64,000 bases of DNA from Octopus sinensis (GCF_006345805.1 NC_043005.1:20584001-20648000); one strand, 5' to 3'. Positions 134 to 41,905 are shown, counted from the first letter of the stretch. Program-made: numbers and translations. The notes: generated from the sequence alone by a model not told the origin.

Positions 134-364
134 CTGAAGGTGTTTTAATATTTAAAAAAGCTTCGATACCAGGTTATGATACATTTGGTCAGCTGAAAAA
201 TGTGAGCTTAAAGGAGTGTGAGCATACTTGTTATCAAACTCCAGGATGTAACTCTTATGAGTATCAAGAAAGTTCTAAAATTTGTGATCTGAGTAATGTG
301 ACCCACTTGATTCGTAACCTCGAACCTAATGCTGAAGATTGGGATACTTATGTCATTAACCCAG
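134..364 (+). CDS. Exon B1, PAN/apple domain type B
   Basis: ctttctag|CTGAAG...AACCCAG|gtcagt, 231 nt; [76 protein letters not shown]; PAN core CxxxC-x5-C-x11-C. Missed by the ORF track (no ATG). Confidence 0.9.
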
Positions 365-1291: not shown

Positions 1292-4200
1292 GTATATATA
1301 CATATGTATATGTATACATACATACATACATACATACATACATACATACATACATACATACATACATACATACATACAGGGTGCGATGGGTAAATTGTCA
1401 CCATTTTATATTTAATTTCATGTATGTGCATTGTATAGTATAGTAGGATCAACTGGGCACTGTCTGTGAAAAAAACAGCACCATGGCACAATTCACTCTG
1501 CCAGAAATTGGGAAATGACATGCTGTACTGCTTGGCATTTGCACCGGAAGCTCCGATGCAAACATTTTGGAGTGTTTAGGTGTCAATCTGAGGACAGAGC
1601 AGAGAGGATTCGGAAAGAGTTGGATGAGTCAAGGTGATTATGAAGGTATGGCAGCTCAGAAAACTCCCTCTGATTGTTCTGAGAAAAGAAAAGAACTCTT
1701 AAATTTGTTGGTGAGATCCAGGCTATGATTGATGATGGTCAATCTCCAAGTCAATCAGGTCCATCACCAGGGACATGGCAGTGTCTGAATTTCTTATTAA
1801 GCAGCTAGTACATGAAGAGATTCGATATTCTTCACATAAGATGAGAAAGGGCTTATCTTAATCCCAGGCCATCAAGGACAAGACAGAAAACCACACTATG
1901 AAGCTTTTGAACAAACTCAAGCATCACCTCCAACTGAACATGCTTTGATTTTTCTCAGATGAGAAAATTTCTGCCAGGATCAGATGATGAACACACAGAA
2001 CAGCCATTGGCTTGCTCTGTCCCAAAACATGTACTGAGAGTGATAAAAACCAAACATCCAATCAACATCCTGGTGTTTGCAGTAATTGCTAGTGATGGCA
2101 ACGTTATGCCTCCATTCATCTTCCCACATGTCCTCAGACTCATCATGGTGTCAACATTAAGTACCAGGAGGAGGTACTGCTGCCCTGGGTCAAGAGAGTG
2201 GCTGCTAGAAGACCCTATGTCTGGCAAGAGGAATATGCACCATGCCACACAAGCAGCAGAAACCAGTTATGGCTGTCAGACAATTTCTGCGATCACATCA
2301 CCCCTAGCATCTGACCACCTAACTTCCCTGATACAATCCCTTTGATTATCATGTGAGGTGCACAGTTGAGTGAGAAACCAACAAAACTGCTTATAACACC
2401 AAAGATGAACTGAAAGCAAGGATTATGGCAACTTAGGGAAATTGTCCAGGAGAGTTGCAGGATATTTGGAAGTTGTCTGGAGGCCATGATTGAAGCCAAT
2501 GGCGATTTTATTGAAAAGAATTTTCACCTTAGCATTTCATGATATTTTTATGTAATTTTGGTAAATATATTTATTTTCATTTTTGTGTAATTTTGACAAC
2601 AATTTATTCACCACACCCTGTATATATATCATCAACATCATCATCGTTTTTAACGTCCGTTTTCCATGTTGGCATGGGTTGGATGGTTCAATTGGGGTCT
2701 GGGAAGCCAGGAGGCTGCACCAGGCTCCAATCTGATCTGGCAGTGTTTCTACAGCTGGATGCTCTTCCTAATGCCAACTACTCCGAGAGTGTAGTGGGTG
2801 CTTTTTACATGTCACCAGCACAGGGGTCAGAGGAGGCTGGCATCGACCATGTTTGGATAGTGCTTTTACATGCCACCAGTACAGGAGCCAGAGGGGGCTG
2901 GCATCATATATATATATATACATGCACAAAGTGGTATCAAAAGGTTCTCAGACTAGATATGGTTAATAAAAAATAACCTATTTACCTACCTTTTAACATT
3001 CTCCTTTGAAATAGTTACCCTGTGCAGCAATACACTAGTCCCAGCATTCCTGCCACTTTCAGAATCTAGCTTGGAAGTTGTTTCGGTAAGTGAACCAAGG
3101 ACCTTTTTGATTCACTCTGGATCTTGACAGTGTTAAAATGGCAACCTTTGAGCTGCATTTTCATCTTGCAGAAGAGATGGAAGTCGGCAGAAGCTAAATC
3201 TGGCAAATAGGGCAAGTGCGGAATCAATACCCCGTTGCTTTTGACAAGAAATTCTGTTTCTAATTCTACTATCAGGTCATCCCATAAGTTTTGTCTGAAT
3301 TTTGAATAAAGAAAACAAGTGATCAAATGCTATATTGAAATTTAATCATTAGTGTACTTTCCTTGATTATCTATGACTTCCTTCCATCTATTTACAAGCT
3401 TATTAATCCCATCAATGTAAAATCTTTTGGTTTCAAAGCAAAGAACTCTGAAATGTCAGTATCGACCTCCTCCTGGCTTGTGAAAGTTATGTCCCCCAAA
3501 TGATTCTGTAAACTACAAAACAAATGGTAGTCTGAAGGAGCAAGGTTGGGAGAATAAGGTGGATGAGGAATTTTTTCCCAACCAAGCTCTTCGATCTTTT
3601 GTGATGTGATCTTTGCAGTGTGGGGTTGCACATTGTGCTGATGAAACATCACTCCCTTGCAGTTCACTAGAGCAGGTCTTTTTTTCTTCAAAGCTTGGTT
3701 CAAATGCTCTAATTGTTGACAGTAGACTTGAGCATTGATTGTTGCACTAGATGGGAACAATTCAAAGTGAATTACTCCTTTGCAATCCCACCAGATAGAG
3801 AGAAGAACCTTTTCCCAATGAAGTTCCCTTCTTGGTTGTGGTTGAGCTTTTTCCCTTTTACCAAGCCACTGTTTGTGATGTTTAACATTTCAATAGAAGA
3901 TCCATTTTTTGTCACCAATCACAAGTTTATCCAAAAAGGGTGAAATGAGTTCACGAGAATGGAGAGAAGAGCAAATGTCAGCTTGGGATTTGCAGTTGCT
4001 TTTGAACAATTCATGAGGCACACATTTTCCAAGTTTAGGAACCTTTCCAAGTTGTTGAAGATGATGATGAACAGTTGTATGGTTTGAACTAAGCTTTATT
4101 GCCAGTTCTTCAACTGATAATGCAGAATTTTATTCAAGTAATGCCTAAAGGAGCTTATCATCAAACTCAACTGGATGTCCTGTTTGATCTTCGTTTTCAA

Positions 4201-7200
4201 GACTGAAATATCCACTTCTGAATTTTGTAAACCATCTTCTGCAAGTTCTTTCATTCAAGCATTCTTTCCCATAAACTGAGTGTATGTTTCGAGTTGCTTC
4301 GGCTGCAGAATTTCCTTTTTCGTACTCATAAAACATTATGAGCCTCAAATGCCCTTTGGATACTTCCATGTTAGAAAGGGTTTTAATCAAAGAAAATTTA
4401 ATTCTATTATTATAATAATATTTAATTAGCTTAGATGTACACAAATGCATAAAAATAATTTTTAATTCCATTAGACATTTTAGAATACTATTAAATTTCA
4501 TTCAATTTTAAAATAAGGTAAAATCGGACAGAACTTACGGGATGACCTGATCTATATTTATATTACATTCATATATATATATGTACACATGCATATATAT
4601 ATATATATGCACACACACACACATATGTACAAATAAATGCATGCATGCATACATACACACACACATGCATACATACATATTTGCATGTACTTATATTTGT
4701 GTGAAAATGTCTTCCATTTGCTTCACTCAATATCATCTATTCTAAATTAGTCATTTTTACTTCATTGTCTTCCACTGCATGACATGCAAGCAATCTTGTT
4801 ATCAAGTTCTCTTTTCAATTTCAGTTACACTGACCATTGACTGTGGACCGCCAAAAGATGTTGCTGGTGCATCAAAGGTTTACAAAAACACAGCCTATAA
4901 ATCTGAAGTGACCTATAGCTGTCGAGATGGACCAAGCAAAAAGTCAGTATGTGGAAAGAACAGTAAATGGACTCCAGTTGCGCTTATTTGTAATGGTAAT
5001 GTAGATAACTTCTTTATTATTGTTTCTTTCTTGGTGATCTCTATATTATAATTCTGAAATGCGAAAAGTTTGTTTGTTTGTCTGGTTTTGGAATTGAGAA
5101 CGGGTTAAAGGCCACTAGATCTCGTCGAATTGACTCCAAAATTTACAGGGACATGTAAAATGAGGTGAGGATGCGAGTGGGCTAGGATAGAAATCCCCAT
5201 CTTAAAAGGTGTCGTTGCTTGGGCCAAAAACGCACTTTGACAAGTCTCCTCTCATTCTTTTATGTATCTGTCTTCCTCCATCACTCTCTTTCCTCCCTTT
5301 CCATCACATTCTATCTATAACGTCGTTTCACAGCGTCTATTATCTTACCCTCGCCGCCATCGCATTCTATTGTCTGCTTGTCTTCCTCCATCTCTCTCTC
5401 TCTCTCTCTCTTTCTCTCCTCCCTTCCTTTCACTTTCTCTCTATAACGTCATTTGATAGCGTCTATTATATTTCCTTCGCCAGCACTGTCACTCTCTCTC
5501 TCTCTACGTCTGTCTGCATTCATAAAGAGAATTATCATCGCCAGCACCACCACACAATCATGATAATCTTTCTCTTAAAACAAATCATCTTTAGGTTTCA
5601 AAATATTTCATTTTTCAGTCCTCTCTTTCATATATCACCTTTTCTTCCTCGATCTCTCTCTTTCCCTCTTCTCTCCATTTTCTCTCTCTCTATAACGACG
5701 TTTGGCACCTCCGCCGTCTCTCTTTCTTCTCCAACGCGTCTCTCAATGACAGCCGCAAAAGTTTAAATATACCTACCACAGGTCTTTCAGAAAGGTAACA
5801 GATATTATTTATTTTTGCGTGGATAAAAAGAATTTATTTGTATGCTCAAGCCGACCGTCGTTAACAAAAATTTTTCTGTAAATTTGAAAAATTTTCCAGT
5901 TTTGAAATATTTAGGAATTCTCTGTTACATCAAGCTAAAAAATTTGCGCCAGCCTTTTAAATCGTCAATGTGTTGCCGTCCATGATGAAGAAGTTTTGAA
6001 TGCTTGCCATGGTGAGTCTACTGTCGTGAGAAAGAATCACTTCAAAACTTGGTGTTAAGGAATTTTCTTTTACATCAAGTTCAAAATTTTATGCCAACCG
6101 TTAAACTGCCACTACGTTGCTGTCTGTCGTTAAGAAATGACGGCCATGGTGACTCTACTATCCTCAGATTCCGTCCCTTCAAACTTTGGTTTCCAATATT
6201 TTTTTTTTCAACTCGCAAATTTGTCTGTCCCTTTTAAATGTTAGTGTTTTGCTGTCTGCCTTGAAGCAGACCTTTCCGTTGTCACTGCCTGATATTTATG
6301 ATTGATCTTTCAAACTACTTTCTTTCTCAACTTACTCAAGATCTTTTGTTGTTTATAAATGGGAGATAGATAGATAAAGATAGAGAGTAAGAGAAAGCGA
6401 GGGAGAGTCCGAGAGAAAGGAAGAGTAACAGAGTGGGAAAGGGAGAGAGAAACAAAGAGGGAGAATCATCATCACCCTCATCATCATCATCATCGTTTAA
6501 CGTCCGTTTTCCGTGCTAGCACGGGTTGGACGGTTTGATCGGGGTCTGGGAAGCCAGGAGACTGCACCAGGCTCCAGTCTGATCTGGCAGTGTTTCTACA
6601 GCTGGATACCCTTCCTAACGCCAACCACTCCGTGATTGTAGTGGGTACTTTTTTCGTCCCAGGGGGGGAGGGGTGCTGACAGCGGCCACGATCGGTTGGT
6701 GCTTTTTACGTGCCACCGGCACAGAAGCCAGTCAAGGCGGCACTGCTATCAGCCACGTTCGGATGGTGCTTTTTACGTGCCGAAACGATGCAACAGAAAA
6801 TAACAATCACACTCTTACCCGTGCGTAGAGTGGGTCACCTTAAGCTAGTTAATATTTATAAATATGAAATGCGAAAAGTTTGTTTGTTTGTCTGGTTTTG
6901 GCATTGGAACGGGTTAAAGGCTACTAGATCCCATCAGATTGACTCCAAAATTTACAGGGACATGTATAATGAGATGAGGACGTGAGTGGGCTACATTAGA
7001 AATTCCTGTCTTAAAAGGTGTGGTTACTAGGGAAAAAGCGCACACTTTGACAAGTCTTCTCTCATTCTGTTATCTGTCTGTCTTCTGTCCATACTCTTTC
7101 CTCCCTTCGTTTCACTTTCTCTCTATAATGTCGTTTGACAGTGTCTTCTATCTTTCCCCCCGCCGCCTTCACTCTTTCTCCCACATTCTCTCTCTCTCTA

Positions 7201-10200
7201 CGTCTGTCTGCATTCATAGAGAGAATTATTATCGCTACAAACCACAAAATCATGAGAACAAATACTTATGAATCAGATAGCCTTAAGGTGACCCACTCTA
7301 CGCACATCTCCCTCTTTGTTCTCTCTCCTTTCGCTCTTACTTTCCAACTCTCTTACCTCCCTTTCTATCGGACCAAAGTTTGAAGGGATAGAACCTGAGG
7401 ATAGTAGAGTCACCATGGCTGGCATTTCTTAACGACGGACAGCAACGTAGTGGCAGTTTAACGGCTGGCGTAAAATTTTGAATTTAATGTAAAAGAAAAT
7501 TCCTAAACACCAAGTTCTGAAGTGATTCTTTCTCATGACAGTAGACTCACCATGGCAAGCATTCAAAATTTCTTCATCACGGACAGCAACACATTGAAGA
7601 TTTAAAGGCTGGCGCAAATTTTTTAGCTTGATGTAACAGAAAATTCCTAAACACCCGCTCCTGTAAATTTTAATCCCCTTCCAGGCCCATTTAGACCCCT
7701 TTTCACATTTTGGTTAATATAACCCGATTTCATTCGGGTCTACACGGGCCACATTTTATAAGATGAGAAATTTTGTCCTAGAGGTCACGCCTTTCATTTG
7801 AGGAAAAAAATAGTTGCCATGCAAACTCGCCAGCACTCTTAACATAGGTGTACATATTTTCAGCTCAACCGACCACTTGGTGTTTAGGAATTTTCTTTTA
7901 CATCAAGTTCAAAATGTTACGCCAGCCGTTAAACTGCCACTACGTTGCTGTCCATCGTTAAGAAATGCCAGCCATTGTGACACTACTCTCCTCAGATTCT
8001 ATCCCTTCAAACTTTGGTTTCCAATATTTTTTATTTTTATTCAGCTCACAAGTTCGTCTGTCCCTTTTAAATGTTAGTGTTTTGCTGTCTGCCTTGAAGC
8101 AGAATTTTCTGTTGTCACTGCCTGATATTTATGATTGATCTTTCAAACTACTTTCTTTCTCAACTTATCAAGATCTTTTGTTGTTTATAAATGGGAGAGA
8201 GATAGATAGAGAAAGATAGAGAGTAAGAGAAAGTGAGGGAAAGTCCGAGAGAAAGGGAGGGTAAGAGAGTGGGAAAGTAAGAGAGAAAGGAGAGAGAAAC
8301 AAAGAGGGAGAATGTGATGATAAAAAACAGAAAGGAAGCAAGAAAAAGTAACAACCACACTCTTACCCGTGCGTAGAGTGGGTCACCTTAATGTAGTTTT
8401 GTTATATTTTTTTGTTGTCTTTGTGAGAGAAATTCTGTAAAACCCAGACTCGAATATCAAAGTTTAAAAGGTTTTAATCGACTAAAAATACAGTAATATA
8501 CATAACAAACAAAGATTGCTAAATTGTAAGGAAAACCAAACTTCAATGCAATAACATTTTTATGCATTCTACACTAACTAAAATCAAACTGAACATGTCT
8601 GCAAACAGAACAGAATTCCGCGCAGTCGCACTGCAGGCATATAACAGCAATCGAGACAATCAAAATCATGTGATCAAAACAAAAATCACATTTTCCCTTC
8701 TAAAGAAAAAAAAAGAACAATTAACCAACAAAATGTAAAATACAAACATAAACATGGGCCAATCACAACAATGTAATAATGAGGCTTTTCATAAGCGTAA
8801 CACATGATCAATCATAAATTTAAACTATCAGGAACATTTTTTGTTCTGGATGAACGCCAGTGCAAAGTAGTTTGAGTTTCTGATTCTTGTGCTGGTGTAG
8901 GTGGGACAGAATCGATCATGGTATTTGAAAAATCACCACGGTTTTCATGCACTTGAGTAGAATCAGTGTCAGCAACATTAGTTTGATCCTTACTTAACTG
9001 ATACTCCTCAGTCATGTTCCCAGTAGGAGCGAAATCTCTAATGGACACAGTACTTTCACGTCCATCTGGGTACTGTACCCTCCCGTGGTTAGGGTTAATT
9101 TGTACCAATTGGGCTTCATCTACTAACAGATCATGCTTATTGCATACATGTCATTTAACAAATACTTTGTCAGGTCCTTGCATTAACCAAGTAGGAACAG
9201 AAACACCACACATAGAACATCTAGGAAATTTAAAGAATCTCTCATGCAGTGTCTCATTAGTTGCCTGCATAATAATGAATGTTGCGAATGTAAAACTTCT
9301 GGAAGCACGACTTCCCATTGAGAAACTGGTATATTTCTGCTATGTAAGGCCAATTTAATGGAATTCCATATTACTCCATTATACCTTTCACATTGAGCAT
9401 TCACACGAGGATTGTACACAGTAGAATGAGTAATCGCTATACCCCTATCATGCAGAAATTGTTTAAGTTCTTTGGATACAAAACATTTAGCATTATCACT
9501 ATGAATAACAGCAAGAAATCCGAAAAGATTAAACAAAACCTTCAAATTACTAATAACGGAATGAGCACTAGTATCAGTGCAGGGAAAAATAAACGAAAAA
9601 CATGAATACTCATCCACAACAGTTAAAAAATAATGGTTCTTTGACACTGAAGGTAGGGGTCCTTTAAAATCAACACTCAATCTTTCAAAAGCTTGAGTAG
9701 ATTTAATTACTGACGAAACAGAGGTTTTAGTAAAGCAAGGCTTCACCTCACAACATATTACACAATTTTTAGTTATACGCTTTACATCATCTACAGAGTA
9801 AGATAGATTCTTAACTTTAATATAATGAAACAATCGTGTGATTCCAGGATGACACAGCGCTGCATGAATACAATACAGTTCATTATCAGTCGTAGCTGTG
9901 CAATAAGTATGCGATAAAGTATTAGATGCAGCATTAAACTTGCCTTGGCGGTAAATGATATCAAATTTATACTGGGCTAGTTCGATTCGCCAACGCATTA
10001 TCTTTATGTTTTTAGGTTTACTGCGCTTTTGACAATTAAACATAAAAGCCACACTGTTTTGACCAGTTATTAGTGTGAAGTTACGTCCAAGAAGAAAATG
10101 AGACCATTTTCTCACAGATTCCACAATTGCCATTGCCTCTTTTTAAATACAAGAATAACGACACTCATTTGGGATGAGGGTTCTTGAATAAAATGCAACT

Positions 10201-12433
10201 GGCTTTCCGTTTTGGTGTAAAATGCCAGCTATAGCTACTTCTGATGCATCTGATTCTATTGAGAAAGGAAGGATTTCATCAATCACTTTTAAAATAGCGT
10301 TTGCTAAACCATCTCGTAAAGTTTTTAAACTTGACTAGGCTAGTTCACTCAAAAGAAAATATTTAGTATCAACCAACGGTTTTATCTTGTCAGAGAATTT
10401 GGGAATCCATTTAGAATAATACGCAAATAGACCAACAATTCGACTCAATGCTTTGTGGGTACTAGGAATAGGTAGTTCTAGTAAGGGTTTTACCCGGTCA
10501 GGGTTAGGTTTCAAGTTACCATTTTGAATTTCATAGCCAAGCAATCGAATCCGTGTAGTGCTGTAAATGCATTTGGTATCATTAAAAGTTAAATTACAGA
10601 CCTTAGCAACTTGAAGAAAATGTTTTAACTTTCGATCATGTTCTTCCTTCGATTTACCGCACACAGTTATGTTGTCGATATATGCAAAATTAGCTCTACA
10701 ATTATGGCTTTCGATTATATTATCGATCACTCTCTGGAAACAGGGTACTACATTTGTAAGTCCAAAAGCAATACATTTGCTTTGATACAATTTTCCCTGC
10801 GCTTTGAAAGCCGTCTAAGGTTGATCTTCGACTGGAATCTCACCTTGATGATATACACTTTTGAGATCTAGTGTGCTAAAATAATTTAATTGAGCTATTT
10901 TTGTGACCATATCATGCATATTTGGCAGTGGATATCCATCTAATTGCGTAAACCTATTTATAGTCTCACTATAATCAATACACAGTCTCTTGCGATGATT
11001 TTCTCCTGATATTACCAATACCTGGGCCCGCCAGGGAGAAACACTGGGTTCAATTAGCCCTTCTGCCAGATCTTGGCTTATAGTATCAGCAATAAATTTT
11101 TCATTATTGGCGGACTGTCTTCTCGATTTCGTAACTATGGGTTTACAGTCAGTGTTTAAATTTTCAAACAACCTCAGTGTAATGTCATGTTAGAGCTCTC
11201 AAATGTAACAGGTGCTTATTACCGTCAAAGGTAATTTGTACATGTTGATGCTGTTTTAAGAAATTTTGTCCTAAAATTATATCTACAAACAAATTATCAA
11301 GTACCACCAGGTTTACTTTCTCATAATTTCTTCCATGAAGTTCAATTGAACTCATACTATAACCGTTGCTTTGGGAATGATTTCCATTGACAGCCATGTT
11401 AATTTCATTCTTTTCAGACTTCACCACCAATTTGTTTTTCTTTGCAAAGTCTTTGCTAATATGATTCATAGTAGAGCCGGTATCAATCAAAGCAAATGCT
11501 TTCACACCATCGACTTTTATTGTATAATTAACTTTAGTAGCAGCTCCAACTTGACATAAAGCCATGGCGAAGTTGCCATCATCAAGAGCTGCTGATGTCT
11601 TACCAAAATTTTTAGTTACTTGACTGGCATTCTTTAGCAAAATGACCAAAATATTCACATTTGTAACACTTGCTCCACCTAGCAGGACACTTAAACCTCG
11701 GATGAAAATCATTAGGTCTGCAAAAAGTGCAGGATTTTTGAGTTCGTTTTGTCACTGAACAACCTGTATTTCCACCAGGAATTGAGATTTTGTCTTCTTC
11801 ACGTGGAATAAACGTTGACAAACAGCTTCCCTGGCTGTTTATAGCAGACTGACTGCTATTATACACTTTGAAATTCCTTTGAGCAACTTCCAGCGGACGG
11901 GCTTGGTTAAATATCGCTTCTAAAGTTATCGCCGCATCTTGAATATTTTCTAAAAGTCTAAGGCGAGTTGAAGATGACGTTAATCCCGAGATAAATGCGT
12001 CAAGAACAGCTTCATTTTTGTGAGTCTCAGCGTCCACAGCTCTGTACCCGCAATCTTTAGCTAGTCGTTTCAATTTCTATAAATAGTCGTCAACTGATTG
12101 ACCTGGTTCTTGTTTGCATGTCATTAAAAGGTATCTCGCAAAAATAATGTTCAATGGTTTCACGTACATTCTCTCCAGAGTTTCAATTGCTTCTGAGTAA
12201 TTCTCACATTCACATATGAGTTCGTAAGTGTCTTTATCTATGTGTGCTATTAAACACCTAAGTTTACTTTCATCCATGATAGGCGGTTCAGCAGGAAATG
12301 ATACTAAAAAATTTTTTAAAGTTCTGAACCAATATTTCCATTCTTTTGAAGCTTGATTTGAACTTCAATCAGTGATACACACACACACACACACATGCAC
12401 ACACACACACATGCATGCACACACACACACATG

Positions 12434-12491
<58 letters not shown>

Positions 12492-15400
12492 CATACATAC
12501 ATGTAAGTATGCATGTACTTATATTTGTGTGAAAATGTCTTCCATTTGCTTCACTCAATATCATCTATTCTAAATTAGTCATTTTTACTTCATTGTCTTC
12601 CACTTCATGACATGCAAGCAATCTTGGTATCAAGTTCTCTTTTCAATTTCAGGCACAATGACCATTGACTGTGGACCGCCAAAAGATGTTGCTGGTGCAT
12701 CAAAGGTTTACAATACCACAGCCTATAAATCTGAAGTGACCTATAGCTGTCCAAGTGGAGTAAACCAAAAGTCAGTATGTGGAAAGAATAATAAATGGAC
12801 TCCAGTTGTGCCTATTTGTAAAGGTAATGCAGATAACTTCTTTATTATTGTTTCTTTCTTGGTAATTTTGTTACGTTTTTCTGTTGTCTTTGTGAGAGAA
12901 ATTCTGTACAATATAAAGTTTGAATCCTTCCTTACTAAAACTCAGCAACCCTCTGAAACATATCTCTGATGCTCTTGTTTTCTTCCAGTCCACCACCATT
13001 AATTATGATAATGCTACTAATAATAATGATGACTGATTTTTGCTAAAATCTAACAGTTTTTGATGGGGGGCTGCTTAATCAATATTGTCAATACTACTCT
13101 TTAGTTGGTACTTTGCTATTCACCCATGCAAGTATGGAAAAAAAAGTTGGATTTGAACTGAGAACATGAAGAAGTTGGATACATAGTGTAAACTATTTTT
13201 TTATAAAGCTCTAATTAGTATACCTGTATATATTAAAAACAAAGATGATAATGATGTTGATAATCATTTTGAATGTAAAAGGGTCTCTATCTGAGACCAA
13301 TTGAAGAACCCCACCATTGAAGATTACCATGAAGTCTATGGACAAGCATCCTCTGCAATTTTCATTCCTTGTCCTACAGTTTCATGCACTGTTGTTCCCA
13401 TCTACTCCTATCATTTTTGCCACATTCACCTCTCTTTCAATAATTTCCATTGAGGACAGTTCCATCCTCACCTTCCTTACAAGTGAAACTTTAAAACTGC
13501 AGACGAAGGATTGACCAAAGTGAAATGCTACTGTCATCCAATCTTTAACCTCTTCCTCAATGCAACTTCTTTTGCAACAATAACCAAACAGAGGAAAATT
13601 TCCTTCTCTGCCAAATTAAATGAAGGTGTGAGGTAATCACCATGATGGACTTGGCTTGCACAAATATGCATTCTGCACATAACAGCAACTCTTTGACATA
13701 ACTCCTGTGTTTGGTTGAAGAATGGGCCAAAATCTTTCTTGCACATTCCCACATTCTTCCTCAGCAGTGTCTCCAGACTCTGAACAATAGTACTAAGAAT
13801 TCTCCTGCTATTATGGTAGATGTCTGCCAAAAGGCTGCCAAACAAATCTGGCATGAACTCAGAGAATTCATAGGGTAGACCATCCAAACCAGACAATTTC
13901 TGACCTGTTTCTAACCTGTGCAATCACTCATCACTCCTGTATTTCAGTGGCTGTCATTTGTCTTTTGCAGAACCTTGCATCTGTTGTAGAATCACAGCAG
14001 GCTGTCCAGGTACAAACTAAAGTCCATCTGTTCAGAACCAAGTAGCATGTGCTACTGTTTGTTTTGGTTTGGTTTGGTTTCTATGGCTAGATGCCTTTCC
14101 TAGCACCAATCCCACTGCAGAGTGTACTGGGTGCTATTTATGTGGCACAATCACCAATGATTTTTACATGGCTCCTGCACCAATGCTTTTTACATTGTAC
14201 CTCAGTTTTAGGATCTCCATTCTGTTGTGATGGGCAGGTCTTCTCAAGTGCAGCAATGTGCCACATATCTCAGTCCTCTGTCATCCCCTTCGTAAGGTTC
14301 ACATAGAAGTTAATGCATGCTCTGTAGTGAATTAACTATCCTCTGGTCAGTCAAAACTTATGAAATATGGCCAACAACAGACGATATAAAACTAAATTCT
14401 AATGAGAAAGAATGATGAGCTTTAGAGCAAGATGTTTTTATAGTTTTTCAAATAACAGTATTAAGATTTAAAATTTTACTAATATAGTGAAGCAGAGTAA
14501 TATTATAGATAACGTCCTTGATTTTTGCTTCATAGTTAATACCGTTTACTTCTTAACATAAAATGAATGAGTAATTTTGTTTTAATTGAAATATTTTTAT
14601 AACAAATAAGAGAATAGAAAATGAAAATGAGAGAGAACAAAATAAACTGTAAACATATAGCTGAACATTACAACATTGGTGACATGAATATGCTCCATAT
14701 TCATTGTGAAGCTCTTAGATTTCTAAATGATCCTCTGAACAGCTACCACATGAGGAATGTTATGCTCCCTAAATTACAGCCTTATCCTGAAGAACTGAAG
14801 GGATTTTTAATAAAAATAATGTAGAATTGATCTCTTTCCATAAAACTTTTAGGAACTGCCTTTTCCTATGCTTCATTTGGGATGAAAATAAATACACCTG
14901 AAGGACAGGGATCTAATTGTTTCAAAGTTCAGGGACAAACTTATACAATTTCTACTCTTCACCCTGAAAGCCAAAGCCCACAGTAGAGTCAATTATCTAT
15001 ATTGGATCATCCCATAAATAATGTGTTGTTTTTTTAATTGCATGAACTAAAAACCAGAAGGGAGTGGAATAAACTATCTGCATCACTTTGCTATAAAAGC
15101 AGGTAGTAATTTTACCTTTTTTCTTATTCTTAGTGTAAACTTTGAAGAGTGCAGTTCTATTTTAAAAGTTATTTTTTCAAAGCTATAATTCCTTTCGAGT
15201 GCTGAGCCTCACAGAGGCAAAGTGGCTCAGTTCTTTTTGAGTGTTGGGCCTCATGGAAGCAGTGACTGAGACCTTTGGCATTATGTCGTGCTTGAGAAGA
15301 AAACCTATCAAGCCAAGCAAAATCGCAGTCATTGTAGATACTGGTTTCATGCAAATTGTTACCTATGCTGGTGGCATGTAAAAGCACCTATTACACTTTC

Positions 15401-18400
15401 AGAGTGGTTGGCATTTGGAAGGACATCCAGCCATAGAAAACCATGCCAAATCAGACTACAGTCTAGTGCAGCCTTCCAGTGTATCAATCTGGTCAAGCCT
15501 TCCAACCATGCCAGTCTGGACAAGGGACATTAAATGATGATGAGGATGATGATAATGGAAGTAACAAAGGAGTATATTTGGCATATTTTGCTTTATGAAT
15601 TCAATAAAGGCAACTATGCAATGGAAAGTGTGAGGAATATTAATGCAGTTTATGGGGATCTGAAATGGACAATAAATGTAAACCAGTGTCAACGGTGGTT
15701 CCAGAAATTCTGAGCTAGAAACTACAGCCTAGAAAATACCCCTTGTCCTGAAAGATCTGTAGAGCTTGACAAGGAATACTGCAAATCCTGGTGGAAGAAA
15801 ATCCCATCATAACTGTTGAGGAACTAGCAGAGAAGCTTTGATTTGGTCATTCAACCATTTATCAACACTTGCGTGCCATCGGAAAAGTCAGCAAATTGGA
15901 TCAATGGCCTCCTCACAAACTTCCTGAGTTTAATCACATGCAAAGAGTGAATGTGTGCTCTTCTTTGCTGTCACGTCTCATGAATGAACCTTATTTGGAC
16001 CAAATAGTGACTGGTTACAAGAAATGATCTCTCTATAAAAATTTCAAGCACTGAAGACAGTGGCTAGGGAAAAGAGAAACACTGGCACCACATGCTAAAG
16101 AAAGTCTTCACTCACATAAAATGTTTTTTATCTGTTTGGTGGGCTATGTAAGGTTTAGTCCACTTTGAACTTATAAACCCAAACCAAACGATAACAAAGT
16201 AGATCTACTGCGAGCAGCTTGAGCAGCTTATGTCAACACTAGAAAAAAGATTACCATCTTCAGTTTGAAGATGAAAGGTGTTCTTCCATCAGGATAATGT
16301 TCGGCCACATACAGCGAGGATGACCTTCCAAAGGATAGAGCAGTTTGAATGAGAAACGATGCTCCACACACCATATTTGCTGGACATTGCCTCATCTGAT
16401 TATCTTTTATTCCACAGTCTTCAAAATCATTTGGATGGAAAAAATATGAATTCTGTAGATGAGGTCAGAATAGTACTGGAGGAGTATCATGGACAAGTGA
16501 ATTTTGGAAGTGGGTCCTTGCAAGTCTACCAGATAGATAGAAGAGCGTTGTAGAAAATGAAGGAGAGTATATTTTAGATTAAAAAAGAACTTTATCTTAA
16601 TTTTGAAAAATAAAAGAGGCATAAAAATAGCCAAATTATTTATGGGATGACCCAATAAATGAAACAAAGGAAGCACCAGATGGAAGCTCCTCAAAATTCT
16701 CAATGTTTAGCTAACATAATGAATATCATTCAAAATGTTATTCATTGCTATAATTCTTATGTTTAGTTACATAAAAAGATGCAGTCAGTGTAATTAGAAG
16801 AAGCACATCATTCCAAAACAATGTTCCTATTTGTAAAGTGGAACTTCATTTCAGGTGAGGTGTAGACATTAAGTAGCATTCTTTTCCAAGTAGTGAAATT
16901 ACAGCTGTATTTATTGGTGAAAATGAAGCACCTCTTGAGAATAGGGCTGTTTTAATTAATCTCAGAATTGTTCTTTTCCAAAGAAATTCTTATTTGTCAT
17001 GTCATCTAGATCCAATGTGCTATCCACGTCTGTTTTCTCATAGTGAATTTGAGTGGCACAAAGAAATCCAGCACCACGAAGCTTATAGAACACCTGTTCA
17101 TTCTATGGTCACCATGCAACAAATTTATAATTTTGTGATATGTCCTGCATTATGATGACATAACTTCGTCTGTGTGACTGGCCCAAACAGCATACCTAGC
17201 TGACTGGCACTACTTACTGTGTCTGTCCGCTATTTATTATTAGTGGACCAGCCCACTTCTCAGCTGGGAGTGTCTGCCACAACACCTCCCTCCTTTGAGA
17301 ATTTTCCTTTTCGTATAATACAACATTACATTCATTTAATTTTTTCCTTTCTTTTTTTTTCTAACCAGAATTATATTTCTCTTCTTATTTAGATTCTTAC
17401 TTGTTCCACATAGAATTACATTTTTTTTTTCAACACCACATTATTTTTTTTTCATTTCTTTTTCTTCTAACCAATTATTTTTCTCTTCATATTTAGATTT
17501 TTTCTTGTTCCAGACAGAATTATATATTTTTTTCAAAATTCTGCAGGTAGTACAGTCTTCATTGTTTACTGGTAGCACAAATTAACATATAGTGACCTGA
17601 CTTAAATCTTTTTTTGCTCCACCCAGAACCATATATTTTCCAAAATGCCGCAGGTAGTACCAGTCTACATTGTTTACCGGAAGTGCTATCAACATATAAC
17701 GACCTGACATAAATCCGTCAAACAGATTTATATTATTTTTCTCTTCAGTTCTGTGTTTGAGTTCCAGTTTTATCAGACATTTTTTCTTCAGAATCTTTTT
17801 TAATATATTTTTCACTGTGTTCATACACTGTGTGTTGTTCAGTTCTGTGTTAGAGTTCCAATTTTATCAGACATTTTTTCTTCAGAATTTTTTTTTTAAT
17901 ATTTTCCCTGTGTGAAGTTCAATTCCGTGCTAGAGCTCCAGTTTTATCTGACATTTTCTCTTCAGAATCTTTTTTTTTTATATACTTTTCACTGTGTGTA
18001 TATTACTTTTCACCGTGTGAAGTTCAAATCCCACCTTGGGATTTTTAACACTTTTCTGCAGCGTGAGCTCTGAATCCTTGTCGCCACTGATATATCCTAC
18101 ATTATGACAACGTAACTTCATCATCTGTGAGACTGGCTTGAAAAGTGTACCTTGTTACTGAGTCTGTCCACTATTTATTAGTAGTGGACCAGCCCTCTTC
18201 TCACCTGGGGGCGTCTGCCACAACATTTTGTTTGGCTGTTAGACATGGTTTTAGTGTTATCCATAGAGCAGAATAACATGTAAAGATTGAGGGATGCCAT
18301 TCACAATTTATTAGGAACAATCATTCTCGATTTCATGTTGAAGAGTACAGAGGGCTAAAGGGCCATCTCAATGCAGAAGAAGAAAGCAGTTTTGAGCTGG

Positions 18401-20689: not shown

Positions 20690-23600
20690 TGTGTGTGTGT
20701 GTGTGATCAAGAATGCGGGCAGAAACAGGTGTGCTTCTGTAGAGGATATACATGGCTACCCAGCCAGAGGAAAGAACAAGGGATATTTGTTCAGGCTTTT
20801 TAATTCATGAGTTCAAATTCTGCTGATGTTAACTTTGCCTCTCTGGAGTCAATAAATTAAAATTCCAGTGAAGTGCAGGGATCAATTTAATTGATAAACT
20901 CCTACCTCAGAATTTTGACTAAATTTCTATGTTAGAAATGATTATTATTGATGTTGTTATTATTTTTCATTGGTCTAAATTTCAATCTAATTCTAGATAC
21001 TCGCATCAAATTTGTAAAAATAAAAAACGCAATGCTGAATGTAGCTGGGAAAACATTGGTGGATAAAAAAAAAGTAACAGTTGATGCCTGTGCAGAACAC
21101 TGTTTGGCTCATACAAATTGCTTGTCATTTGAAATAACTAAAAAAAGTGGTCTCTGTTACTTATCAAAGCAAACTGCAGCTTCCTCCACGAAAATACAAA
21201 CAGACAAAAGCAGGGATTATTACCAACGAGTGAAATGTAATTATTATTTGCATTTTATTACTGAAGTCTATTTTCCTCTTTTTCTCAAAATTTGTGACTA
21301 CATATGTATATTTTATAATATATAAAGACATTGATGTAAACACATTCCCAAAATAATCAACTTAAGGAATTGTAAATACTGTAAATTCTCATACAGCATT
21401 TATTCACATTGAATATTTTATGCTTGTTTTCAATAATTTCCTTCTTTTTGTTAAGAAAACTTCCTTTTCTCTTATGCTCCATCAGAAATTAAGATAATTC
21501 TATTCTTGTTTTCCTTAAACCTGAGTAGTATTAGTAATAGTGGCAGCAACAGCAGCAGGAGTAGTAGTTGTAAAAGCAATTTTCTCTTCATTTGTCCATT
21601 TTGGTATGTATTAGATACTGCTATTACAACACAGTATTTTAACACTAGTTACTATCCTTCATAATTTGATATACAAAAATAACAGAAAAAGTAATCGTAA
21701 CCTATGAAGTTGTGTTTTGCTTATATTTTGTCATGTTTGCTATGGCTGGATACTCTTCCTATCATAATATGAAGAGAGAATCCTCTCAACTTAAATAAGT
21801 TTCTATTTAGTATAGTTCTATGGATTTAAAAACAACACATCCATTCACTTTGATCTCAAAGATTTTGTTTTTTCTTGTTGAAATCCTTCCTTCAAAAAAA
21901 AATGTTGGATATCAAGGGAAATTCACTAAGTTTAGCGATCTCAGTAGTACAAAGTGGTGTCAAAAACTTCCTGTACTAGTTCTGTAGTGCATCACCAAAT
22001 AGCAGCACACAGTTACATGCATAGTAAGAGCTAGCAGTGACCATTATGAAGCAGTGTGCAAAGGGACATTGTTGTGTTTAATTTGCAAGTTGTGAAATTT
22101 GTATTTGTGTGATCATGCATATGCTGTAGTCTGTGATTGTTGTCATGGAGAGGAAGTTGGAACAAAGAGCCAACATCAAATTTAGTGTTAAACTTGGGAA
22201 GTCTGCTACAGAAACGTTGAGCATGCTCTGGCAAGCTTTCAGTGATAAGTCAGTGGGCTGTATGCAATGTTTTGAGTGGCACAAGCACTTCAAAAGTTGA
22301 AGAACATTCCTGGAAGAGGAGGAGAAATCTGGAAGATCTACGACAAGTGTCACCCTCAGAAATGTAGAGAAATTCATCATCTTGTGCATGAAGAATGTCA
22401 GAGAACAACCAACGACATTGCTGTTGTATGGCTCTGTGCAGGCAATCCAAACGTTCATGAAGAATTGGATTCTTCACGATGATAGTGCACCATATCATTG
22501 AGTTTTTCTCACTTGTGAGTTTCTTGCCTAAAACAACATGGTGTGGTTTCCACACCCACTCTATTTGCCAGATTTAGCACCTGCACTCTTCCATATCTTC
22601 TCCAAGATGAAAATGCAGCTCAGAGGTCACTGTTTTAACATTGTTGTTGAGATTCTGAGTGAATTGCAGAAGGCCCTTCTTATTTTGTTCTTTTCCTTTT
22701 TCCTACTATTAATTCCACTCATCTCTGACTGCCATTAACAACGCTACTTCACTTTGGATTAGATAGCTCAGCAAGTTCCCATGTTCAGTATGCATAGTCT
22801 TCCATTATAATAATAATAAATATTATTATTTTTCAGTAGTCTTATTTTTGTAACGTACTTTCACTGCACTACTGAGCACAGCTGTGTGCCTTGGGTATGT
22901 GCTGTGGTTTGTTGTGGGGCTCTTATTTTTACTGTATTGAAAGTGTTTTACGTAGGATGTGTGCGATGCCCAGTAGTGCTGTTTTCTGTATGTTATATAT
23001 ACTTGTTAGTTTTGATGTTTTTGTTATGTATTTGTTTGAATAAATTTTTATCATACCTAATGCACCTACTATGATAGGAATTGTTTCTGTTTTTAGACTC
23101 CACATTTGAGTTACCTCTATTTCCAGGTTTTTGTATTTTGAAATTTTCTCCATTTCTTTTAGAGAAACATTGTTGTATGTTGGTATTGATACATCAATTA
23201 GAAAGCAAGAGAGCAGTGCATGCCATCAAAGTGACACTGGGGTAAAATATACAAAGCACCATATCCCCATCATAAACCCCCATCCGATAAGGGTACACTA
23301 AGCACAAGCATCACTATCATATGTGCATGACATGATGATCTCTGTGCCATCTACTGGATCTATCTGCAATGCATGCAAAGTGACAAAACTGTTCTGCATG
23401 CACATGTCCAGTTCTCAAGCCTTGCTGATGTGTGGATTAATTTCAAACACCTACTTTCACTTGTAAGTTGGATTTGGTTATCAGCTGAATCCATTATGAA
23501 GATCATGCCATTGCCTTCCTTTGATTGGGAAAAACAGGCAATTTCTAGCTGTTTGATGGCTTTGGTGAAAGATTTTGTGTGGTAGATGAACTCAGAAAAG

Positions 23601-26600
23601 GTGAAGATGAGATGCCTTTCTCATTAGTCAAGACCCCATTAACTTTTTCAAGTTTTACTTAAAATGGGAGTTAAGTGTAGAGAGAGAAACAAGTGCTGCC
23701 TCCCAACAAATTTGTTGACACATGAATGTGAGTAGTGAATATGGTTCAAATGAACAGAACAGCTTTGAGCATATGCCTGTTGATTGAAGACAGACTATTG
23801 AGAGGGATCACTTGGCTCAGTGGCCAGGGTTTCCCCAAGTAACTCTTGAAGGTCTCCTATGCTTTGAGGCAATTTTTTCCTTTGAAATCATTGATTCTGT
23901 ATTATTTTACATACTCAATTACTTAATCTTAATTTTATCTTCATGTGCCATCCTCATTATCCTGTCTACCATTAGTGATTAATAAGTAAAATATTGTTTT
24001 ATAGATGTTTTTAAATATTAGATAATTGTATTGAAGTACCAATATTTGAATGAGATATGAGAACGACATCTGGTGCATTATTTTAAAGATAGTATATATC
24101 ATAAAAACACACATTCCATCTATAAAATTATTTTTCAGTGTAAGACACCTTTCTCAGAATTAATGTGACTTCTAGTACATCATGACACATATACAAAAGC
24201 TCATCTGAATATTTCAGTTGTAGACAATCCATTTGTGCATCACTCTTTGATGGTTTGGTTTGTTTTTGTTTAAAGATTGAATGGCCATAACAACACTTAA
24301 TGTATTGGTTGGCTACCTGATTAATGCAATATTGACCCTGCAAGCAAATTCTGCTGAGGTCGGCTTTTCCTTTCATCCTTTCGGGGTTGATGGATTAAGT
24401 ACCAGTTGCGTACAAGGGTCGATCTAATCTACTGGCCCCCTCCCCCAAAATTTCAGGCCTTGTGCCTAAAGTAGAAAAGAATATTGATCCTGCAAAATTA
24501 CCCAATTAGAAAAGAGATGTACAAACATATTGTCTGCAGCTCAAATATTTGAGACAAGGTTTCAAATAAGTCTGAAGATGTTCTACTACTCACATGAATT
24601 CTGATTAGGTGTCATTTTGTGGAGCAGTTATTTACTTATAATAAATTATCCATTTACAATTTATGCACCTGATACTTTAAAATATTTGATATATGCTAGA
24701 AAATATGTGAGTGGTGCTTGTGTGTCTGTGTTTGGATGAGTATAAAAGGTATTTCTTGTTTTCTTTTTCTTTTTCCAGCTAATGAGCACCCTATTACATT
24801 TAAAAGAGTTACCATACCAAATCGAGATAATATTGGAAGGCTTAAAAACATGAACTTAGCGATCTGTAAGGAAGCTTGCCGTGCATATCCAGATTGCAGA
24901 GTTTATGAGTACAATGAAAAATATAAATTCTGCGACCTAAGCAATGTGACTCACTTGACTGATGATCTTAAACCAAATGATGGAAACTGGGATGTGTACA
25001 TAATTAATACAGGTCAGCAGAGCATTTCCATGTTATTTGTAGTGTGCACATCAGTGTGTTTTTAAATTTACATATATGTATGTTGTTTTATATATATATA
25101 ATCCCTCCACCACCATTTAAATTTAAATGTATATGAATTACTTCCCTGGCAACTCATGTACTCCTCCTGTTGTGTGGGTAGGGATATATATTTCGCTTAC
25201 TCCCTTCTTTATAGCATATACTTGTATACATGCATCTTTATGAGTGCAGTATATATCTAAGTATATGCTTATGTGGACTGCATATATAAATATTTAAACA
25301 TGATATTTTAACCTTGTTGTGCAACCACCCTATCCTCTCTTCTTGTTCAACCTACATGTCCAACATTCATACCTTCTTCATCTTTCTCTTTGTTGGCCCT
25401 TGTGCTTGATGTTGTATAGAATTGAGGAGATTGTTATTCATTGAATAAATTACGTACCAAAGCTCTATGTTAGCTGGTAAGTGTTTGCACATATCTACTT
25501 TTCAAGTGCTGACAAAAGTTCCATGAATGCCTTCCTAATGTCACTCCCAAGCATACAATTTCAAGGCTGCTACCATCAAAGTTGGTACAACAGCAGGAAG
25601 TACTGGTGAGATTGTTGAATGGTTGGAGCAATGCCATGTTGTCATGTTTGGTGTGCAAGAAGTAAGATGGAAGGGAACCTCAGCTAGATTTCTCACAGGT
25701 AAGAAACAGAGGTTCAAATTCTTCTGGGTAGGTAGGAGTGATAGAGTGGGTGATGTAGGCATACTTTTAGCTGAAAAGGGGGTAGAAAAGGTAATTGAGG
25801 TAGTTAGTGTTTGTGATAGGGTAATTAAGCTGAGACTTATAGATAAATTAACAGTTACATTTATCTCTGTTTATACTTCAAATCCGAACTGGTTGATGAC
25901 CAGGACAAATTTTATGAGGTCCTTTTGCAGACTACCTTAACAACAAATGACAAGGGCTTGGTTATTGTGCTTGTGACTTCAAAAGACATGTTGGGCAGCA
26001 TCTTCTAGGATTCTATGGTGTGCATGGTGGTTGTAGCTTTGGTCCTAGGAATGAGGAGGGAACAAGGCTGCTGGAATTATGTGATGCAAAGATCTCATTA
26101 TCTATACACTAACTTCAGAGAAACAGCCAGCCACCTAAGCACTTAACAGTCTGGTGGGCACATAAGCCAGATTGATTACCTCCTCACCAGGCAATGAAAT
26201 AGACAGATGTTTGCAAATGCAAAGTCGTTTCTAGTTGAAGAGTGTACTACCCAAAATACGTTACAGGTTACTAGTTAATGATTTCAGAATTAGAGCTACA
26301 ATGACTCAGAATTGGAAGTTCCTGTGGGACATTCTGCTGAGAGCTATAGACCAAATCTGTGGCTAGTGCAAAGTCCCACCTAGGCTGAGGTTGACATGGT
26401 GGTGGAACAAGGATGTAGACAAGGCTATAAAAGCAAAGAGATTGGTCTGAACAGACTGAAAAATTGGTGAAAATAGAAAATTATATCAGGTAGCTGGAAA
26501 AGAAGCTAGGCAACAGGTTTACATAGCAAAAGGAATAACAGAAGATGAGAAATTTGCCAATGTTCTACAGCATGGGGATCAGAGATGTGAGATGTTCAGG

Positions 26601-37000: not shown

Positions 37001-38239
37001 ATGTGTCATCTTCTCAAGCACAAATGCCAAAAGTTTCAGTCATTCATCATTGCCTCTGTGAGGCCCAATGCTCAAAAGGAACTCAGCCACTTTGCCTCCA
37101 TAATAAATGCACAAACAAATGGGTATCAGACTCGAGAAGGCTAACTAGGAGAGAATACTTACCTTAGTGGTAAGGGTGGCTATGGTTTTGTTGGATTTCC
37201 AAGAGTAACCATTTGAGGTCTCCCATCCAGAGGAGAATTAATATTCTTTGTTTAAAATTTTGGTATTTTTCTTTTTTATTGTATAGTTTACATGCACTTT
37301 TATGTCATTCCTTGTTATATCCATGTGTGGACAGGATGCCGGATGCACTTTTACTGAAAGACAAGAAGCCGAACAGACACAATGCCAAACGGACATAAAG
37401 ATGAATGGACACAATGCCAAATGGACATATAGCTGAATGGACACAATAATAATAAAAAAATTCTTACCTATATAGTTTAATGACCAATTCACCAATTTGG
37501 CACTTAAGATTTAATAAGATTAAATTTGTCATTCTGGCATCTTGTCTGTTTGGCATTGTGTCCATTCAGCTTCTCATCCTTTGGCAAAAGTGCATTTGAT
37601 ATCCTGTCTGTATACTGTTATATCTTGCTCTATTGTCCCCAAAGTTCTCGACTACTGTTAGCGATTTATAAAAAGCTTTGTTTTTGTTATTTTATGGGTA
37701 TTTTAAGAATATATCATTATGTAGAGGTACCATGTAAATGAAATTTTGAATAAAATATGAGAAAGACATCTGATGCATTGTTATCAAAATGGATGATTTA
37801 TTATAATAGCATGATCAATCCACAAAATAATCTTTCAACATAAGACATCCTTCTCAGAATTACATCATAAGACATACTCAAAACTTTGCCTAAATATTTC
37901 AGTTTTTGATAATCCATACAGCCATTCTTCTGATGATACACTTTTGTTTAAAATTGCATGGCCATAACAATAGACATCTTGGTTGACCACAGGTTAAGGA
38001 GAGCTTTCACCTTACAAAAACACACTATCAAGTTAAGTATGTACAAATGGATTATCTGCAGATATAGATAGTCTGAAAGTATAGTCTGAAAGTAAACCTC
38101 AATATGTTCTACAACTCATAAATTCTAACTAGGATATCAGTTTATGAAATAGTTATTTGTGGTATTATTCAGTGTCCTTTTACAAAACCATGCAACACAA
38201 GCTTTATAACATTTATTGTGTGTGTGTCTGTGTGCATGC

Positions 38240-38277
<38 letters not shown>

Positions 38278-40321: not shown

Positions 40322-41905
40322 GTGACCAGCAAGCATAAAAGCCAAAATGGTAAATTTATAAATTTATAATCTAGGGTACAAGAGAGTACCAGTGTTTCTA
40401 GAAATAAGAGTCGAAAAATACTCAAATAAGCCACAATATCACTAAAAAGTCAACAAGCTGACGAAATTGAGGAGTGAATAGAAAAGCCAAGATACTATTG
40501 AATTATATGGATAATGCCATACTAAATTCTGGTGCCTTTAACTTAAGTACCATATTCATCTGAATCTAAATTTTACTAAACTTATATATATACACACACA
40601 TATATATAACGTAAAAGACTTTTTCTGTTTCTATTCCTGAGCACTATACTAATACATTTGTTTGTTTGCACTCCACCTGCCTTCGTCTTTTGTTTATTTT
40701 CGTAAACCTTCCCGTTATATATATATATATATATATACATACATATATATATAGACATACATGGATGATGGCTCCTTTGCATTGAATGAGGCTGCAAAGA
40801 GAAAAGTTTGGATACGCCAGTATAAAATATTAAAGAATTTAATATTATTATTGTATATATCAATTTAATCGATAAACTTAATAGCGTTGTTTGTTTATCA
40901 ATATCATTTGGATCTTGTATTATACTGAGTTTGATTGTTGTTGTTAATATTATTATTGTTATTGACTGATTGGTAGTGGACTGTCGGTTGTAGTTGAATG
41001 TCTTCATAGTGCATTGTTCATTTTTTCTAATATTTTTGCACCTTTCTTTAATTTATGGGGCTTAGATGTTTTTCTTACTTTTCATTAGTAAATAATTTTT
41101 GCCATTATATCATATTATATATATTGATAGTTATAAGTTATGATAGTTATTAATTATTATATCTATTTATTTAGAATGATTTATTATTATTTTTATAAAG
41201 GGATCTAATGTACTACATTTATCTAATTTGAGAATTAATTTTGTTAGACAATATATCATTTAATAATTAGGTGGTATATTTATTAAGTAGTATTAAATTT
41301 AAGTAAATTTGGTTTTATATTAATTGATATTTTGGTCAACTATATTATCGAGTGATATATTAAATCTATAGGAACTTGTTAGTTTATTTAATGAGTGTGT
41401 CGATATTTGAACCATTTCTTATTTTGATTCCAGTATTAATGGCTTGTACTAGCATTGTGTATATTAATTAATTTTAATGTTTTAGTATTAATTGCTTAAT
41501 GGGTATTAGACTGTATTTGGATGTTTATTAAAAAAACATATTAATTAATAATCTGATTTAACAATACCTTAATGTTCTTAACATTCAAATCAACATCTCT
41601 GTCTATATATCTACCCTCTTTATAATGTTATTAATTAACATGAAAATAAGTATATGTATTGATGGAAAACCTCTATAAATGGCTGATGATTGCTCAACAT
41701 TTTAAAACTGTTGTAATATTTACAATGTTTAATAAAATGGTGTAGCGTGAAACAATCATACCAAATTACCGAAGATATTCTTGTTGCTTATTTTGATTAC
41801 AATCACTCCATGGATTTATATGGAAAACACCGTACAAAATTCGGGTGCATCCAATTTAAGTACCACATTCATTTGAATCTATATGTATATATATATGTAT
41901 ATATA

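Follow-up and report, generated by a model that had tools for sequence, protein, structure and literature searches.

The closest described counterparts of the exons considered here are the Sushi, or complement control protein (CCP), modules of vertebrates, which in the regulators of complement activation are encoded by one phase 1-1 exon each, and the nearest relatives in sequence are octopus proteins with a repeated Sushi-PAN-PAN arrangement, (Sushi-PAN-PAN)n. We analyzed a stretch of 64,000 nt from Octopus sinensis (GCF_006345805.1, NC_043005.1:20584001-20648000; the window, below), eukaryotic DNA with introns, microsatellites, and transposable elements (TEs), which carries part of a gene of the latter kind. 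Two neighboring Sushi exons of this gene, S1 and S2, are copies of one duplicated unit of about 0.5 kb, and they have diverged asymmetrically. Our tentative reading is that the divergence of S1 may have been adaptive, under selection and partly through multi-nucleotide events. For positive selection on the pair the case is suggestive, not proven, and its statistical side is weaker than an earlier interpretation of the window (the sequence-only reading) had suggested.

Like the vertebrate complement modules (DAF/CD55, CR1, CR2, MCP, and MASP-2), the octopus Sushi exons encode four cysteines and a tryptophan in the expected order, and one module corresponds to one symmetric exon, which permits in-frame duplication. 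A profile built from the six Sushi (S) exons of the window matched solved structures of DAF, CR1, MASP-2, CR2, and MCP, with E-values of 5e-5 to 1e-3 for DAF, CR1, MASP-2, and CR2; a Foldseek search of the PDB with the single-domain S1 model returned nothing below E=0.6. Compared with the complement modules, the octopus module is shorter (56 amino acids) and lacks the 7-9 residues that DAF has at the loop aligning with residues 20-22, and it sits in a Sushi-PAN-PAN repeat, an arrangement not known in the complement regulators.

Protein searches, including a full HMMER scan, returned the same order of Sushi (S) and two PAN-type (A, B) modules only in octopus proteins, annotated as uncharacterized or 'SVEP1-like' and 50-62% identical over 350-970 amino acids, the best being about 60% identical to the window protein. 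They include LOC118764742 (2643 amino acids) and LOC118764741 of O. sinensis, LOC106869402, LOC128248838, LOC128248840, and LOC106869390 of O. bimaculoides, CAI9728792.1 of O. vulgaris, and 'GON-Abd-1' of Abdopus aculeatus. These proteins reach 2643 amino acids, a neighboring O. vulgaris gene model reaches 4470, some members end in a GON domain, and the genes lie in tandem clusters on one chromosome per species. The window protein shares with them the module order, the motifs DCGPPKD, YKSEV, NCLSFEI, DYYQR, and LSNVTH, the common Sushi-Sushi doublets, and an ABS/ABSS alternation (in the window, B-SSAB-SAB-SSAB-SA). Module order, motifs, and similarity across several modules thus mark the window gene, as far as sequence comparison goes, as a member of an octopus (Sushi-PAN-PAN)n-GON family. 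Unlike those relatives that end in GON, its window portion contains no such domain, because the gene runs off both window ends. The family appears to be restricted to octopuses, and the literature searched gave no published function for it. The decapodiform cephalotoxin family differs in its domain make-up. In three related loci (L001-L003), one each from O. sinensis, O. bimaculoides, and O. vulgaris, DNA identity to the window does not exceed 82%, TE copies giving the best matches, and no orthologue of S1 or S2 was found in these loci or in the protein collections searched.

The homology between the two units is confined to about 0.5 kb and takes in a (CA)n/(CATA)n microsatellite, 142 nt of upstream intron, the exon, and 88 nt of downstream intron. 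In blastn, 4585-5038 matches 12407-12866, and the alignment is ungapped from 4683; past a 3.36-kb insert in the first copy it continues with four differences in the 45 nt compared (8398-8442) and then ends. The parts of the duplication are as follows.

4585-5037, plus strand: copy 1, left part, with microsatellite, 142-nt upstream intron, S1, and 42 nt of downstream intron (blastn and ungapped comparison)
4825-4995, plus strand: S1, upstream copy of the duplicated Sushi (CCP) exon, 171 nt, phase 1-1, with splice sites and a Pfam Sushi match
5038-8396, plus strand: insert in copy 1 only, two tandem Helitron-like elements (5038-6850 and 6851-8396), outside the duplication
8397-8442, plus strand: copy 1, right part, resuming after the insert and homologous to 12866-12911
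8443-12406, minus strand: spacer between the copies, a broken long terminal repeat (LTR) retroelement remnant (open reading frames in three frames, Pfam)
12407-12911, plus strand: copy 2, uninterrupted, with microsatellite, intron, S2, 88 nt of downstream intron, and the empty site GGTAA/TTTTG
12653-12823, plus strand: S2, downstream copy of the Sushi exon, 171 nt, phase 1-1, nearer to the other paralogues

With both TEs set aside, the two units abut head to tail, which fits a simple tandem duplication whose 0.23-kb intron later grew to 7.7 kb. Relative to S3-S6, the same 4-nt deletion marks the downstream intron of both units, so the downstream flanks belong to the same duplication as the exon. 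The insert had previously been called a Helitron, and its features bear this out: it starts with 5'-TC (TCTCTA), ends in a 6-bp hairpin (CACTCT..AGAGTG) followed by CTAG in the first element and GTAG in the second, and lies between the A and T of GGTAA/TTTTG with no target-site duplication, the empty site being kept in the S2 unit. The two elements are 84-93% identical to each other, and the largest open reading frame tested in the insert (5206-5763) has no Pfam match to a Rep/helicase or otherwise, which fits a non-autonomous element. The spacer remnant matches zf-CCHC, gag-asp_proteas, RVT_1, RT_RNaseH, and rve in Pfam. These domains, which lie in three different frames, correspond to a gag zinc knuckle, an aspartyl protease, a reverse transcriptase, an RNase H, and an integrase; a pair of LTRs was not detected for 8443-12406.

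This anatomy bears on the suspicion, raised by the sequence-only reading itself, that S1 and S2 are uncollapsed haplotypes or an assembly artefact, with alleles of one exon placed in tandem. Young tandem repeats beside microsatellites can be error-prone sites of assembly, and beyond that nothing specific speaks for an artefact here. Everything outside the 0.5 kb of homology differs, the 3.36-kb insert of one copy faces a clean empty site in the other, and a 4-kb retroelement remnant lies between them. The sequence upstream of S1, like that downstream of S2, matches the introns found at the equivalent places in other modules, and the window contains no N runs. Because of this arrangement and the lack of N runs, we set aside haplotypes or a false duplication as extremely improbable.

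Microsatellites of the (CA)n/(CATA)n type recur between a B exon and the next S exon (4550-4682, 12407-12510, 38200-38330, 41865-42000, 56130-56400, and 59650-59780), one of them co-duplicated with S2, and they may have mediated the unequal exchange. We also considered an old Sushi-Sushi doublet homogenized by conversion, an idea that arose from the old doublet S4-S5 and the array SSAB-SAB-SSAB-SA. It was rejected as the main explanation: S1 and S2 fall beside S3 rather than beside S4 or S5, the S1-S2 intron shares no homology with the S4-S5 intron, and the units abut once the TEs are removed.

A recount agrees with the earlier figure of 17 differences between S1 and S2 over 171 nt (0-based exon positions 0, 1, 5, 61, 63, 99, 101, 102, 107, 108, 111, 113, 136, 138, 156, 159, and 169). 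Among the 56 whole codons, 12 carry replacements and one only a silent change (AAC/AAT, position 136). Positions 0 and 1 lie in a split codon (GTT/GGC) that takes its first G from the preceding exon, which makes position 1 a synonymous-type change, and path counting accordingly gives about 15 replacement to 2 silent differences; the replacement excess claimed earlier stands, but its exact split of 16 to 1 does not. As had been reported, the upstream 142 nt of intron hold two differences; the downstream 43 nt before the insert hold another two. Over all the flanking intron compared, divergence is 3.5% (8/230 nt) against 9.9% in the exon, a ratio of 2.8 that matches the roughly threefold excess noted before, and the exon/intron contrast in difference counts has P=0.008-0.012. 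The pair is the closest among the six S exons of the window, all other pairs differing at 44 positions or more. The loop strings RDGPSKK/PSGVNQK and VALICN/VVPICK were read correctly, and C6, C32, C42, C55, and W48, said to be kept in both copies, are in fact invariant in six of six window S exons, with the tryptophan between Cys3 and Cys4 as Sushi/CCP modules require.

A comparable contrast is known from the primate red/green opsin genes, where conversion homogenizes introns and selection keeps exon differences. The opsin duplicates share with S1/S2 an exon more diverged than its intron and a small number of differing residues. They differ in that S1/S2 is a duplication of one 0.5-kb exon unit within one gene, whose copies abut once the TEs are set aside, and in having functional tuning sites, of which none is known for S1/S2.

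Most of the exon change lies on S1. Parsimony places about 10-12 changes, all replacements, on S1, and about 5-6, including both silent-type changes, on S2; the S1 branch is about 3.5 times longer than the S2 branch, and dN, the replacement divergence, is higher for S1 than for S2 to every outgroup. Among eight S exons, S1 has five unique states and S2 two. The polarizable intron differences fall about evenly on the copies, which confines the excess to the S1 exon and argues against local mutagenesis caused by the Helitron as well as against a large foreign tract that would span exon and intron. Error-prone repair at the Helitron insertion was considered separately and is not supported, as only one S1-derived intron change adjoins the site and downstream changes are equally often S2-derived.

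The changes in S1 form five or six tight clusters in predicted loops, namely at the site matching the insertion-prone complement-CCP loop, in the C2-C3 loop, and in the stretch before C4. In an AlphaFold model of S1 (predicted local distance difference test score, pLDDT, 88) the strands span residues 15-21, 26-32, and 38-42, and most of the replaced residues (2, 20-21, 33-38, 46, 52-53, and 56) fall at strand ends or in no strand at all. Residues 20-21 align, in the profile comparison, with the site of DAF's 7-9-residue loop insertion. Eleven of the 12 replaced residues occupy positions that vary among the other copies; the exception is P33R, a proline in the other five window copies, whose replacement gives a CRDG motif found also in an O. 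sinensis relative. With 11 of 12 changes at variable positions and CRDG present elsewhere, S1 stays within the repertoire of the family and does not look degenerate. Read directly from the sequence, an N-T-T glycosylation sequon is present in S2 and absent in S1. Nucleotides 104-118 of S1 (4929-4943, GGACCAAGCAAAAAG) resemble nucleotides 20-32 of the same exon (4845-4857, GGACCGCCAAAAG), and three of four S1-derived changes at nucleotides 107-113 shift toward this quasi-repeat, as read by eye, which hints at templated multi-nucleotide mutation.

Evidence for selection comes from joint codon/intron likelihood, in which the neutral rate of an MG94xHKY codon model is tied to the intron. Omega (the dN/dS ratio) then lies between 2.3 and 4.9, with P=0.0005-0.05, depending on the intron chosen:

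all 230 nt of intron as neutral reference: omega 3.5, P=0.0024
proximal 185 nt of intron: omega 4.9, P=0.0005
without the first 94 nt, which hold no differences: omega 2.25, P=0.0495

The replacement-to-silent ratio of the pair, 14:1, also exceeds that of the family (327:153, P=0.027; counted as 15:2, P=0.06), and the ratio of exon to intron differences, 17:4, is unlike the approximately 1:1 of old paralogues (P=0.004).

We read the course of events as follows. A recent tandem duplication of about 0.5 kb copied one phase 1-1 Sushi exon with its microsatellite and short intron flanks, and the Helitron-like pair and the LTR retroelement later came to separate the copies. Both copies retain splice sites, an open frame, the four cysteines, and the tryptophan. 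S1, as a redundant extra module, has diverged asymmetrically and may have done so under selection for an altered binding surface, with some of its changes probably due to multi-nucleotide events. The analysis shows the duplication with its anatomy, the counts, and the asymmetry; from these we infer that the excess stems from selection and not from conversion or from clustered mutation.

Several observations weigh against adaptive divergence of S1, among them the weak value obtained above without the first 94 nt of intron. Coding sequence alone does not place dN/dS significantly above 1, an outcome that the sequence-only reading had itself counted against selection: Nei-Gojobori (NG86) counting gives dN=0.116, dS=0.027, and omega=4.3 with a Fisher P=0.10 on about 38 silent sites, and pairwise maximum likelihood under MG94xHKY gives omega=2.8 with a likelihood-ratio P=0.14. 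Nor do the substitutions behave as independent, since nine of the 16 gaps between differences are 3 nt or shorter (P=0.004), seven differences fall within 15 nt, and merging neighbors into events leaves eight in the exon and seven in the intron (P=0.28). Position explains the pattern better than exon membership does: a single change-point has an Akaike information criterion (AIC, lower being the better fit) of 179.3 against 184.2 for the exon/intron split, and the exon/intron term is no longer significant once a change-point is allowed (P=0.16-0.39). The 5' 203 nt of the duplicated unit hold five differences, none of them in the first 94 nt, and the 3' 198 nt hold 20; divergence is higher in the downstream intron (6/88) than in the upstream one (2/142), and codons 3-19 carry no replacement, although the family changes there equally often (P about 0.005-0.01). 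The intron itself may be an imperfect yardstick. In old paralogues, the intron flank has p=0.26-0.37 against pS=0.40-0.57 at synonymous sites, and the exon shows about the same divergence as its flank (each roughly 0.3). Such conservation of the flank may reflect constraint, in which case the intron may understate the neutral rate. Counting changes by parsimony over 20 S exons of four genomes, a crude method and one applied with synonymous sites near saturation, yields an omega of about 0.6 overall; at the 12 codons that S1 and S2 have in different replacement states it is about 0.7. The old paralogue S exons have omega 0.27-0.61 with a replacement-to-silent ratio of about 2:1. Finally, the asymmetry between S1 and S2 (about 10 versus 5) is itself not significant and is polarized on outgroups about 70% identical.

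The support from the intron reference, a dN/dS above 1, is therefore fragile, given the clustering, the change-point, the uneven introns, the conserved flank, and the family omega of about 0.6. The earlier claim of positive selection after duplication is partly supported: the pair shows a replacement excess over the family baseline and an exon-to-intron ratio unlike that of old paralogues, and an excess over the intron whose strength varies with the stretch of intron taken; coding sequence alone gives no significance, the changes are clustered, and the family as a whole shows no such signal. The arms-race signature of diversifying selection across S paralogues was likewise not seen, and pervasive diversification of the same sites throughout the family is not supported by the omega of about 0.7, with the crudeness of that count in mind.

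Clustered, exon-centered differences are what a mosaic of ages, or templated change without positive selection, would leave behind while mimicking a dN/dS above 1, an account we consider unlikely, though the most serious of the alternatives. S1 and S2 might already have been about 7-12% diverged when conversion re-homogenized the 5' part (the upstream intron and the first 60 or so exon nucleotides), short tracts in the 3' two-thirds of S1 might have been copied from an unseen paralogous Sushi exon, or several changes might be multi-nucleotide mutations. Besides the better change-point fit, the 5'-3' imbalance, the more diverged downstream intron, and the clustering, both nucleotide states occur among paralogues at eight of the 17 sites, the CRDG motif of S1 exists in a relative, the changes at nucleotides 107-113 tend toward the quasi-repeat, and donors would be plentiful, given dozens of similar exons per genome in proteins of up to 2643-4470 amino acids. 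Multi-nucleotide mutations reportedly produce false signals of positive selection in branch-site tests (Venkat, Hahn and Thornton are said to have described this in 2018), and S1/S2 shares with such artefacts its clustering and its adjacent changes (GAT/AGT, CCA/GTA, and AAAAAC/AATACC); it differs in that the intron has only one adjacent pair. The sequence-only reading had named a match of the 3' half of one exon to another paralogue as a mark of gene conversion, but a search of the window and the three related loci (193 kb), with up to 16% mismatch allowed, turned up no donor for either variant segment. The 3' part shows 13 replacements to one silent difference where imported or old sequence would be expected to show about 2:1 (P about 0.03, hand binomial), and derived intron states are not concentrated on S1.

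The non-significant within-exon tests, with 17 differences and about 38 silent sites, also leave room for relaxed constraint and sampling noise, under which a redundant, rarely used, or skipped copy would drift and the 15:2 split, together with the low-divergence stretch of intron, would arise by chance. The placing of 11 of 12 replaced residues at freely varying family positions, where the family omega is about 0.7, would suit such drift, as would the loss in S1 of the proline held by the other five window copies. Drift, however, cannot exceed the neutral rate, and the dN of 0.116 is two to five times the intron divergence; the exon-to-intron ratio is unlike that of old paralogues (P=0.004), and S1 retains its open frame, splice sites, four cysteines, and tryptophan. 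We regard relaxed constraint as rather improbable.

That a young duplicate diverges fast and asymmetrically is well known; S1/S2 is a new single-exon instance of this in an uncharacterized family. If the selective interpretation of S1 is true, the pair is a clean and very young example of a modular extracellular protein gaining a binding module by exon duplication followed by rapid retuning of loops. If selection is false, the case is a caution that clustered differences and patchy divergence in tandem-repeat genes can imitate a dN/dS above 1 and that flanking introns are unsafe as a neutral yardstick. The 12-residue difference between S1 and S2 also offers a concrete handle on this octopus-restricted family. 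A bolder proposal, which we find doubtful, is that S1 is a newborn Sushi module whose rapid series of loop replacements is giving it a different binding specificity, in an octopus-restricted family that is expanding in tandem. Were the family secreted and in contact with prey or pathogens, this would amount to an exon-level arms race that duplicates and retunes single modules in giant genes. Any link to immunity, to venom, or to the immune or gamete-recognition arms races proposed earlier is purely conjectural. S1 and S2 are neighboring homologous exons of equal length and phase, as mutually exclusive exons are, and their symmetric phase 1-1 allows either or both to be spliced in with the frame intact; that they serve as alternative cassette exons seems less likely.

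The gene that holds the pair lies on the plus strand and extends past both window ends. Its 14 exons in the window are all phase 1-1, with AG/GT splice sites and lengths divisible by three, and join into an open reading of 971 amino acids in the order B0, S1 S2 A1 B1, S3 A2 B2, S4 S5 A3 B3, S6 A4. There are three kinds of exon: S (171 nt, Sushi/CCP), A (240 nt, PAN), and B (231-234 nt, PAN). Pfam Sushi (PF00084) scores 35.9 bits against a cut-off of 20.7 in the predicted protein holding S1, S2, and S3, and the A and B exons match PAN_1 (84.2 bits, cut-off 21.4) and PAN_4 (41.1 bits, cut-off 27). The remaining exons are as follows.

134-364, plus strand: B0, PAN-type exon before S1, which supplies the G of the split codon
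20997-21236, plus strand: A1, PAN-type exon after S2
24779-25012, plus strand: B1, PAN-type exon
31176-31346, plus strand: S3, older Sushi exon, closest window relative of S1/S2
35227-35466, plus strand: A2, PAN-type exon
38368-38601 and 55896-56126: B2 and B3, B-type exons
42121-42291, plus strand: S4, older Sushi exon, first member of the old S-S doublet
48478-48648, plus strand: S5, older Sushi exon, second member of the old S-S doublet
54523-54762 and 62889-63128: A3 and A4, PAN-type exons
59920-60090, plus strand: S6, older Sushi exon

S1 and S2 cluster together beside S3 and are lineage-specific. The members of S4/S5 are each closer to an exon of another species than to each other, which makes them an old doublet. 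The related O. bimaculoides locus (L002) contains a Sushi-Sushi doublet (11282-11452 and 12277-12447) with exons 85% identical and flanking introns 50-60% identical, the reverse of the pattern in S1/S2 and about twice as similar as the corresponding S4/S5 doublet of the window; homogenization limited to the exon may be responsible.

A flank of about 140 nt upstream of the S exons is conserved in the window (for example, 4683-4824, 31034-31175, 41979-42120, and 59778-59919). For the 94 invariant intron bases, an explanation by conserved RNA structure (an editing duplex or splice selector, for instance) was considered and rejected, as folding showed no unusual RNA structure around the S1 and S2 units (z=+0.5 and +0.9). 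Several introns of the gene also carry remnants of mariner/Mos1-type transposases (HTH_48, Transposase_1), at 3069-4501 on the minus strand and at 15534-16550, 22130-22297, and 43637-43882 on the plus strand, one of which lies directly upstream of S1.

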